Part shown: in pieces, positions 40,201 through 57,196 of the stretch
Layout of the letters: each line of letters starts with the position of its first letter
Numbering within the stretch: position 1 is the first letter of the stretch
Source: Octopus bimaculoides
Taxonomy: Eukaryota
Direction of reading: 5' to 3'
Length of the DNA: 64,000 bases
Assembly: GCF_001194135.2 (NCBI RefSeq)
Contig: NC_068987.1
Coordinates: 104,339,960 to 104,403,959 of the forward strand
Made by a program: the position numbers and the translations under genes
Notes under the pieces: generated by a model
What the model saw: the letters and a program-made list of their open reading frames with translations, nothing else
Told to the model about the DNA's origin: nothing
Database searches by the model: none

Positions 40201-43200
40201 TTTATGTCCCCATAACTTAACAGTTCGACAAAAGAGACCCATAGATTAAGTACTAAGCTTACAAAGAATAAGTCCTGGGGTCGATTTGCTCGACTAAAGG
40301 CGGTGCCCCAGCATAGCCGCAGTCAAATGACTGAAACAAGTAAAAGAGTAAAAGAGTATATAACGAAACGATATGCGTATTTAATGCAAGGTTTGTTAAA
40401 AAATGTTGAAGCATAATGACAATGAGGAAAAAGTTGATTAATATATTTTCTAAAATATGGGAGATAACTCAGGCAGACAAATAATTTAAGTCGGTGTTAT
40501 CATTGCAGTAAAATGTAGCTAGATGTAAGCATATCTGATCCCATTATATATTACTTTACCTTTTTAATGCTCCATCCATTAAGTATACTAGTAGCTATTT
40601 ATCTTCTTGCTACTGTTTAGCCAAAGGTCAACTCAGTAGACCTATGGTCTCAGGTGTTCCATTTGTGAATATCTTGTCTTTGCATGTCAGAGAGTACGTT
40701 GATCAATGAATGTATCTCTGTTTAAGATGGGAAGGTGTGATTTGAGACTAATCTGCCTATTATTTCTTGTAGGTCAAGAGTCTTCCTTGTTGGCTCATAC
40801 TTATTAATCATGTGGATTATCTCTTAGAATTATTTGGTTCTTAAAATAGGTTGATGTAAACAGTCCTAAAAGACTCCAAGAAATTATTGATAAAATCTAC
40901 TATAGATTGCCATGCAGTATTCAGAAAGATCTCTTGTGTTTCTCACAAGCAAGCATAAAACCTGGAAAGAAGTTTTTTTTAAAAGATAAATCTAAGTGGA
41001 TTAACAAACTCGAAAGATTGAAGGAGAAAATATATATTATTGTGCTGCATACCTTCATATTTTGAGCTTAAAAAGTTTAAAAAAATAAATATATAAATAA
41101 AAATAGTCATTACGATGAAATTAATTTTCATCCAAACTGCTTCACGATGCTGTTGATGATGATTATGATGATGATATTCCCCCCAAAATAACGTGTTATT
41201 CTGAAAATAATTTTATAGGTGTATGCATGACGGTGTGGTTACAGAGCTCAGATTGCAACCACATGCTTTTGGGTTCAGTCCTACTGGGTGGTGCTTTGGG
41301 CAGTTGTCTTCTATTATAACCTTGAATCTACCAATGCTTTGTGAGTGAATGTAGTGGCTGACAACAGTGCAGAAACTCATTATATATATAATTGTTATTT
41401 GTGATGAAACAGTAATAGTTCAAAGCAGCATTTTGTATATCTTAACATGGATATACTGTAGAAAGCCACAAAACTGTAGTACTCATCTCGAGACAGCATC
41501 TTGTATAGATGTATAGTGCTATAAAGCACTGAGGTATATCAGTAGTAGACAAAAAGTGTTCAGTGGTGGAATTGTTAAATCTAGATTTCTGCTTTTTTTT
41601 TTACATATCATCAGAAGCAAGGATTCACTAGCAACCACAGACTTAGACAAATAGTTCAACCCTCATTGATATGTTAAAATCTAAAGAAAGGTTTTTAAGT
41701 AGCAAACTGCAAGAATTTATCATGTGAGAAGAAACTAACCCAAATGAAGGATTACAGAGATATGAACAAGTATAATAGAAATGTCAAAAGAAATTACAAT
41801 TCTGAACATATTAAAAATAAAACAAAAGAAAAATCACATAAAACCAATTGTAATTCTTCGAAATTTTCGAATGAGGCTAGCAATTTTGAGGAGAGGGGCT
41901 TTGTTGATTACACCAACCCTTGCATTTGACTGGTTCTTTATTTCATCGTCTCTAGAGGAATGAAATGCAAAGCTGACCCCAGCAGAATTTGAACTCAGAA
42001 CATAACTAATCAGAAGAAATACATAACAGTAATTTCTTCAAAGCAATTGCTCTCATAATCTGAAATTTTAACATCTCAATGCTTTTTGACAAATTTTATC
42101 AATTTATTTGTGTGTGTGTGTGTGTGTGTGTGTGTGTGTGTGTGTGTTCTCGATCATTTTTTTTTTTAATAAATAATTTTGGTAACATTTAGAATTGGAT
42201 GCTAGTGAAAAATTAACTAATGATGAATTGATCTGAATTGACCAAACATCTTGAGTACTATGTTGATTGAAATTCCAATTGATTGAGACCTGTGCCTAAG
42301 TAAGAAATCAATATTGCAATAAAATTCTTTTAAATTTGTGTAGAAATAGTGAATGTAAAATAGAACTAATTTTTTTTGTTTTGTTTTCTTTACTTTTATA
42401 TTTCAGGAGAACGTAATCTTAGCCATAAAGGTCTTCAAGGAGCTTTGATGATTTCACTGTATCGAGACGAACCACGTTTTAGTCAACCATTTCAGATTAT
42501 CAGCAATATTATCGATATTGATTCGCAGTTAACCAAATGGCGCTGTAAGTAGAAGACAAGATTGAAGTGCATAAAGTGTTGTACAAATCTTATTGAAAGT
42601 TATTTTCTCTGTGGACATTCATTCACTTAAATATAATATTGTATTTGACATATCTTTTCAAAAATTTTATATATCCACTGAGGCATTAAACTCACATATC
42701 TAATCATAAAATATCTCTCTCTTTTGTGTGTGTGTGTGTGTGTGTGTGTGTGTGTGCATGTACATACATACATCATGTTTCTGTGGAAGACATTACGCAT
42801 GTGATTAGCAGCTGTCCTAAAATGTCGTCACGGTACTACCTCTCTATGCCACACGATGTTGTTGCTATCCGCAAAATAGGCTGTCCTGAAATAAACTTAG
42901 AAAACCCCTCTATTATGGAATACATTCATAAACACCAATTCAAGGAATACTGGTGGAATATTCCCATCAAAACTCCAGTCAAATGTAAGCATAACATGCC
43001 GGATATTGTTGTTTGGGACAGAGAGGCAAAGGTATGTACCATCATAGAGGTTGGCTGCCCTGCAGATATAAATATCTCTTTGAAAATCAAAGGAAAAGAG
43101 GATATCTATTGAAAACCGCTTCGAAACCTCCAGCTTCTATATCCAGACTATGAATTCATATTCAAACCAATAATAATTGGAGCACTAGGTTTTGTTAGTA

Positions 43201-56040: not shown

Positions 56041-57196
56041 CATACATACATACATACATACATATTATTATTATCATACGTAGGTATATACATTTACAGA
56101 AAACTGCTTCGAAACGAGCCAACCAAAGAATCGAGGCGCTACGTGGTCATCAGACGTGTTAGAAATAAAAGTAAAATCGTTACTAAATTAAACGGTAGTG
56201 CGTTAATAAAGTAGGACTGATATTATTAGATAATATAGTCCAAGATGCTTCTAAAAGTCAGGATGACAAGAATTCCATTTATCATAGGTCTCCTCGACCA
56301 AAGTTGGCTTGGATTTGGTCATCATTTTTTACTTCGTGATATACTGGAAATTAAATATAAAAATCAATTGCCGAAATACAGATTCAAAACTAAAAAGAAC
56401 TTCTAGCGCACTTTGTATAGATAGTTGAAGAAAGCTGTTTCATGTGAAAGCTTCGGAAAAAGACAAACAGTAGCTGAAAACTACTGCTTATCTTTTGTAT
56501 ATAACAACATTAAGTATAACACGCTTTCATGAAACTTCAGCATTGATATGAATAGCTATATATATATATATATATNNNNNNNNNNNNNNNNNNNNNNNNN
56601 NNNNNNNNNNNNNNNNNNNNNNNNTATATATATTTATAAATCCACTGCATGATTAGATAATTCTTGCGACGCACCGTTTGAAAACAACAACAAAAAATGT
56701 TTGGAAATCTACCAATATGTTAAAGTATTTTATAAATAACCACGAACAGTAGCTGTTTTCAGGAAAAAAGAGTAAAAAAAAAGGATGACACGATTTGTGG
56801 GAGCTAGGCTTAATTGGGTAGTAGATTTGATCCATCACCCACTTTAACTCCGTCTTCCGGTACCTTGGGTGCCTTCAGAGGAGTCCGTTCTGGTGCAAAC
56901 ATTCGGGTCAAGTTTTGAAGATGTCTTAGATACCTACCTCCTACCTCCACCAGTCTCAGAGGCACTGTAAACGGCCATAAGTTCTCTCATCATTCTGACT
57001 AAAAATATCAGTAAAAAACAGACGTATTCTGAAAATTTCAGTTTATAAGTGGAATAGATGAAACATGCAAGACTTTTATAAAGTTCAAAACATATGTAAA
57101 AATTTTCTAAGTTAGAAATCCACCCATTCCTTATAAAAAAAATAATAATTCATAGAATTAACAGGAAAGTGAAAACAGATATAATGCAATACCGTA

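Follow-up and report, generated by a model that had tools for sequence, protein, structure and literature searches.

A stretch of 64,000 nt from Octopus bimaculoides (contig NC_068987.1; the whole stretch is the window in what follows) contains at least five copies, among them c1 to c5, of a long interspersed nuclear element (LINE) that encodes a restriction-like endonuclease (RLE). The copies are dead, 5'-truncated members of several subfamilies of one non-long terminal repeat retrotransposon lineage, and each of them begins directly at a (CATA)n microsatellite. The interpretation favoured here, at a probability of roughly 0.75, is that of a lineage of Dong-like RLE LINEs that use target-primed reverse transcription (TPRT) to integrate into tetranucleotide arrays, in this case (CATA)n. 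On this interpretation, insertion is specific and in one orientation: the target is (ACAT)n, which is the same repeat as (CATA)n, in this and at least three other genomes, sister families use (CTTA)n, (ACTG)n or (ACTC)n, and distant relatives use (TAA)n.

The junctions carry the argument. On the sense strand of the element, (CATA)n is found at the 5' junction of all five window copies and at the 3' junction of the four copies in which it can be scored. Perfect arrays of three or more CATA units represent 0.45% of the window (n = 15, both orientations counted), and 10 of these 15 adjoin a LINE copy. All five 5' junctions meet the array in the element's sense orientation, with an estimated chance of ~3e-4 per junction; five correctly oriented junctions out of five cannot be chance. 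The junctions are mostly in phase, i.e. ...ACAT-element-ACAT.... The five copies also have five different truncation points together with common 3'-end features, a hallmark of TPRT.

An initial annotation of this DNA had listed four truncated copies, c1 to c4, with (CATA)n on both sides of each, a very short 3' tract in c1, two copies stacked in one array and several subfamilies; all of this stands, and c5 is added. Each flanking repeat below is written on the strand of its copy. Copy c1 (42774-43435, + strand) is truncated within the CCHC motif and retains a decayed RLE core (PHD..PD..E..K) with three in-frame stops, followed by a 3' untranslated region (UTR) of ~105 nt; it is 64% identical to the database protein P0001. 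Its 5' flank ends in ...GCATGTACATACATACAT (also given as ...ACATACATACAT), an (ACAT)n tract at 42757-42773 that (TG)16 precedes (42725-42756), and its 3' junction (43436-43492) reads ACATAC passing into (AC)n. Copy c2 (22848-23048, - strand) consists of 3' UTR only, with (ACAT)6 at its 5' junction (23049-23072) and an (ACAT)7.5 tail (22818-22847), which is (GTAT)n on the + strand. Copy c3 (55293-55581, + strand), the last ~64 codons and a ~100-nt 3' UTR with a shortened hairpin, follows an (ATAC)~17 array (55226-55292). The (ACAT)5(GCAT)2 tract at 55582-55610 serves c3 as its tail and c4 (55611-56039, + strand) as its 5' flank; c4 is a stacked insertion that retains the last ~40 codons and a 307-nt 3' UTR and ends in an (ACAT)6 tail (56040-56064). 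Within the c4 3' UTR there is a 79-bp tandem duplication (55732-55893; 2.1 copies, 91% identity), of which c2 holds about one unit.

Copy c5 (50420-50875, - strand, running from 50875 to ~50420) was absent from the initial annotation and was detected by tblastn with c1 (E 3e-19). It is 5'-truncated and degenerate, and its 5' end adjoins ...TACATACATACATACATACAT (also given as ...CATACATACATACAT), part of a (CATA)n array (50876-50955) that is perfect beside the element and degenerate further out. A repeat resembling a short interspersed nuclear element (SINE) breaks the c5 3' UTR near 50405, and the 3' junction is lost. This SINE-like repeat (~50215-50405, - strand) reads tgactgcggccatgctgaagcaccgcc.... 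A second one (53331-53500, + strand) is tRNA-like (ggttccgggttcagtcccactg...) and enters (TA)n at the edge of an assembly gap at 53504-53947. The SINEs, together with a base composition of 36% G+C, suggest an octopus as the source of the window. There are also (CATA)/(TATG)-type arrays in the window with no recognisable LINE remnant alongside, at 5591-5631, 53203-53293 and 54023-54098.

How are the copies related to one another? Copies c1, c3 and c5 show 70-73% mutual DNA identity, and c2 and c4 are 98% identical across 197 bp. Over the c2 5' array, c2 goes from 98% to ~65% identity with c4, and further upstream the identity is gone; because of this collapse the array is taken as the boundary of the copy, and the alternative that it arose by expansion of a repeat internal to the 3' UTR was rejected. 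The flanks of c2 and c4 are unlike outside the repeats, and the two are therefore separate insertions.

The same architecture is found in other assemblies (loci carry L numbers here). On a 1.26-Mb contig, L002 is a 5'-truncated copy, 50% identical to c1, with ~50 CATA units directly upstream and three downstream (ACATACATACAT). Locus L014, on a 530-kb contig of another assembly, has ~160 bp of (CATA)n (~40 units) upstream and 2.5 units (ACATACATACAC) downstream. A third assembly, ERZ25073825, carries on an 873-kb contig a full-length element of 4.4 kb, L009, between ~390 bp of (ATAC)n (~98 units) upstream and (CATA)26 downstream. Counted together with the five window copies, all eight CATA-flanked copies have the same strand polarity. 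The initial annotation had proposed that (CATA)n is a target and not just a tail, and the repeat at the 5' junction of these three loci and of all five window copies supports this. The upstream arrays are usually far longer than the downstream ones (50 against 3 units in L002, 40 against 2.5 in L014 and 98 against 26 in L009). This asymmetry, seen in a small sample, may reflect a placement of insertions close to where an array ends downstream, or growth of arrays by abortive insertions.

Sister families have (CTTA)n on both sides (L003, L006, L008, L015, L016 and L017), with junctions that are mostly in phase, ...CTTA-element-CTTA.... Tails open with the family's own unit and then shift to variant units; in some CTTA families these variants are (ACTG)n, (CTTG)n or (TCAC)n. 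Assembly ERZ25073825 contains a CATA family (L009) as well as CTTA families (L015, L016). In each of its families the repeat adjoining both ends is the family's own unit, while arrays further out may be compound (L015). Such family-matched repeats within one assembly argue for specificity and against a general liking for repeats. Loci L008 (in its entirety), L015 and L016 are head-to-tail chains of up to six copies with tetranucleotide arrays between them. Among distant relatives, L012 ends in TTATTATTATTA, a (TTA)n tail, and L018 starts after AATAATAATAATAATAA, an (AAT)n 5' flank; these (TAA)n-type relatives have only ~25-31% protein identity. A neighbour-joining tree of the C-terminal ~200 amino acids (aa) places CATA-flanked copies on three branches among CTTA families.

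The encoded protein identifies the type of element. When 1.8 billion representative proteins were searched, 5942 matches came up, including full-length open reading frames of 1085-1232 aa. Word-indexed protein searches yielded nothing but fragments and full-length reading frames without names, and the clusters they belong to added no informative name. The full-length relatives have a central RVT_1 domain (E 1e-20 to 1e-37), and the window copies are cut off downstream of this reverse transcriptase (RT). Copy c1 and database relatives share CRLC-x7-H-x4-C, RHD and KPD...E.SCP.D.N...K..EK, and also the C-terminal motif PI(I/V)IGA(L/T)G...LG(F)...SGTVKI.KTF; the common C-terminal motifs that had been pointed out for these copies are real. 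From the RT through the CCHC motif to the end of the RLE, solved R2 proteins can be aligned with a profile built from 14 full-length relatives (E 7e-73 to 6e-44), and the alignment spans CRxC..H..C, RHN and KPD..D..K. The C-terminal 298 aa were modelled with AlphaFold; the best matches of this model in the Protein Data Bank are R2Tg, R2Pm and R2Bm (E 4e-10 to 4e-5), and the next are other PD-(D/E)xK nucleases. Profile and model together support the earlier identification of an RLE LINE; Pfam on c1 gives only a sub-threshold restriction-enzyme match. No Exo_endo_phos domain, of the apurinic/apyrimidinic endonuclease (APE) type, is present in any full-length relative. Each of 11 complete or near-complete relatives has one CCHC motif, and none of the 11 has a C2H2 or CCHC motif upstream of the RT, i.e. 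an N-terminal zinc finger. Their N-terminal motif, W..E....L...Y...GY..R....W....P....Q.L.DQ.R.I, has Myb-like spacing and is common to the (TAA)n-type relatives. The domains encoded by the lineage thus come in the order RT, CCHC motif, PD-(D/E)xK RLE, which is the architecture of the R2 group. No relatives were found in the prokaryotic genome contigs or viral contigs that were scanned.

A conserved hairpin is present in the 3' UTR, 40-80 nt upstream of the tail. Its outer stem measures 3-5 bp and its inner stem 6-7 bp, with a TT / C internal loop between the two, and the terminal loop is (T)TGT(T). The sequence GCCTTG.ATCT.TG.TAGA, recognised in the initial annotation as a motif kept by divergent 3' UTRs, forms the 5' half of this two-part stem. 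In seven sequences that represent at least five families, 83% of the cells are paired and 10 of 12 base pairs have changed on both sides, i.e. are compensatory; none of 500 shuffles equals the observed value, and slid controls are 26-49% paired. A covariance model of the hairpin, R1, detects it in c1 (43359-43388, + strand; 31.9 bits, E 6e-8), c4 (55968-55997, + strand; 38.6 bits, E 3e-10) and c2 (22890-22919, - strand; 41.2 bits). Over the window the model recovers only the three training copies and misses the degenerate hairpins of c3 and c5. Outside the training set, it detects L004, L005, L006, L001 and a 3' end that precedes the 5' array of L003. By analogy with R2, the hairpin is likely a protein-binding site on the element RNA.

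A mechanism can be proposed on the model of R2. The element protein would bind its own RNA via the 3'-UTR hairpin and nick the (TATG)n strand of an array. A short (ACAU)n at the 3' end of the RNA would then pair with the nicked DNA and prime reverse transcription, and the second strand would be cut in the same array, where the often incomplete cDNA is joined. A second cut within the same array would leave the repeat on both sides, mostly in phase. In-phase junctions are consistent with two cuts that fall at one set position within the unit, and also with a realignment of repeat-ended RNA on a repeat primer. Could the RNA itself specify the target? It is conceivable, but rather improbable, that the target is read mainly by pairing between the 3' repeat of the RNA and nicked DNA, with a permissive endonuclease, such that mutation of the tail retargets a family; this would represent a naturally RNA-programmed LINE. 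The association with CATA on three branches of the C-terminal tree and the tails that drift from the family unit fit such a scheme. If it is true, mutation of the tail would be enough for switches between ACAT, ACTT, ACTG and ACTC.

To what known elements is the lineage closest? On indirect evidence it appears most like R4/Dong within the R2 group, because it has no N-terminal zinc finger, a Myb-like N-terminal motif and (TAA)n-flanked distant relatives, and because Dong-R4 elements are abundant in octopus annotations (PMC13282606). The insertion sites of R4/Dong elements lie in rDNA or microsatellites, and the N-terminus of these elements bears a SANT/Myb-like domain but no zinc fingers (PMC7998251); site-specific insertion into a microsatellite is what is seen here. 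Dong itself (Bombyx mori; DongAg in Anopheles, DongBg in the snail Biomphalaria) is, like the present lineage, an RLE LINE whose single ORF has RT, CCHC and RLE but lacks an N-terminal zinc finger, and it inserts into a microsatellite in one orientation with the repeat at both ends; its repeat, (TAA)n, is that of the distant relatives found here (PMC3812793, PMC7998251). It differs in that the target here is (CATA)n, with (CTTA)n, (ACTG)n and (ACTC)n in sister families. The (TAA)n target of Dong proper is absent from the window copies and is found only at L012 and L018, the low-identity relatives. Dong and R4 also carry a self-cleaving ribozyme at the 5' end that resembles that of hepatitis delta virus (HDV) (PMC3774820), which Rfam does not detect in this lineage. 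At the 5' ends of full-length relatives (L001, ~470-500; L006, 105-130; L013, 1-35; L017, ~4700-4790) there is a short motif that includes CGGACGTG and frequently lies within a small hairpin; Rfam detects no HDV-like ribozyme at these positions. The miRNA-type matches that Rfam gives are repeats folding on themselves.

With R2 the lineage has in common an RT-CCHC-RLE region homologous in sequence and fold, integration by TPRT and a structured 3' UTR that, by analogy, probably binds protein; R2 has N-terminal zinc fingers and a unique 28S rDNA site, whereas here there is no zinc finger and the target is a simple repeat. Besides Dong, the microsatellite targeters found in the searchable literature are Waldo (ACAY; APE-type, R1 clade), Mino (AC), Kibi (TC), Koshi (TTC), Togen (TG) and some HERO families (PMC3812793, PMC4640811, PMC7998251). 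The ACAY class of Waldo (WaldoAg1/2, WaldoFs1) includes ACAT, and thus CATA (PMC3812793), but Waldo has an N-terminal APE-type endonuclease in place of a C-terminal RLE; the likeness is a convergence on a similar target and no kinship. Togen, a fish element near NeSL with a (TG)n target, and microsatellite-specific HERO families are RLE LINEs with microsatellite targets (PMC4640811), although the repeats are different. The traits of NeSL and Togen, N-terminal zinc fingers and spliced-leader, U2 or (TG)n targets, are not seen. Abundant and recently active Dong-R4 LINEs have been described in octopus genomes with no target named (PMC13282606, PMC8967140, PMC9115989). Microsatellite targeting by RLE LINEs is already known, and (CATA)n appears to be a new target for a Dong-like lineage: no RLE LINE with (CATA)n or any other tetranucleotide as its target was found in the searchable literature, a search that did not extend to Repbase and Dfam.

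Might (CATA)n be merely the tail of a LINE that inserts without preference, the 5' arrays being tails of older copies or products of unequal crossing-over? The stacking of c4 on c3, the 3' end of another copy that precedes the 5' array of L003, the chains of copies split by arrays in L008, L015 and L016 and the plain duplicates among the L008 copies are all compatible with this. Upstream of the c3 array (55100-55225) no coding remnant and no convincing hairpin of an older copy is found. Neither tblastn nor R1 finds an older copy upstream of the 5' arrays of c1, c2, c5, L002, L014 or L009, and the upstream arrays of the latter three (160-390 bp) far exceed any tail in those families. Moreover, preferred landing on tails would already amount to repeat targeting. 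This explanation is considered unlikely. A further alternative is a passive association, in which LINEs build up in repeat-rich, low-recombination DNA or microsatellites arise beside them later. For Drosophila Waldo-A and Waldo-B, a passive build-up close to CA repeats has been suggested (PMC3812793), and the window is very rich in microsatellites (153 rows in Tandem Repeats Finder output). Yet the junctions meet the arrays exactly, the polarity is uniform and the phase mostly kept, flanks match the family's own tail within one genome, and (CA)n, (TA)n and trinucleotide arrays, which are far commoner in the window, are unused, except for the (AC)n directly after the ACATAC tail of c1. Passive association is thus very improbable. 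Even less credible is an artefact of assembly, with LINE fragments misjoined to microsatellites in a gapped draft. There are eight gaps in the window and two, 50016-50184 and 53504-53947, are within the span of the finding; these two interrupt tracts of (TA)n or (TA)n/(TG)n, and none is in a copy or junction, with no N in or touching any junction. The same architecture is present on contigs of 0.3-4 Mb in four other assemblies. Simple repeats are where assembly breaks are expected; the gap at 50016-50184 conceals sequence past the interrupted 3' end of c5.

A different question is whether the mechanism is correctly described but belongs to HERO or to an unnamed clade of the R2 group rather than R4/Dong. 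For some HERO families, microsatellites are the reported targets (PMC4640811), Hero families are also present in the O. vulgaris annotation (PMC13282606), and it would fit that Rfam detects no HDV-like ribozyme. Against this, the lineage profile retrieves (TAA)n-flanked relatives, a hallmark of Dong, and the Myb-like N-terminus without a zinc finger is as in R4/Dong (PMC7998251). In octopus, Dong-R4 is abundant (1129 recent insertions, ~4.2 kb on average) and Hero rare (13 insertions), and five to six copies per 64 kb suits the abundant class. Another clade is a rather unlikely alternative.

Several observations weigh against the targeting interpretation or its clade label. The two flanks of L010 differ: upstream the repeat mixes ACTT and ACAT, whereas downstream it is (ACTC)n. 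In L001 the 5' flank is non-repetitive. A possible sixth window copy (57030-57170, + strand), a very degenerate 3' fragment that reads ...SGIDETCKTFIKFKT and has a weak TTTCTAAGTTAGAAA hairpin, has no recognisable (CATA)n on either side. Some adjacency stems from stacking or tandem duplication and not from fresh targeting: c4 sits on the c3 tail, and L008B/C and L008E/F have common truncation points and are therefore the result of tandem duplication of a copy plus its array, not of repeated insertion. The sample for CATA is small, five local copies and three relatives. As to the label, Pfam gives no match to the N-terminal motif of the relatives. Rfam finds no HDV-like ribozyme at 11 loci, but finds none in the (TAA)n-type control L018 either, and the test is insufficiently sensitive.

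Target-specific RLE LINEs are natural models for site-directed DNA insertion and are now tools for it. Closely related families whose 4-nt repeat targets differ, and which have a small covarying 3'-UTR hairpin in common, constitute a compact system for the study of target choice, with the endonuclease, the Myb-like N-terminus and RNA pairing as candidates for what sets it. If the whole genome resembles the window, in which 10 of 15 arrays are tied to these LINEs, a large part of all (CATA)n arrays would be LINE-associated. Insertions may hide inside microsatellites and escape short-read callers such as MELT, and this is one possible reason for the little recent Dong activity seen in octopus (PMC9115989). 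The family may also extend the arrays that it occupies.

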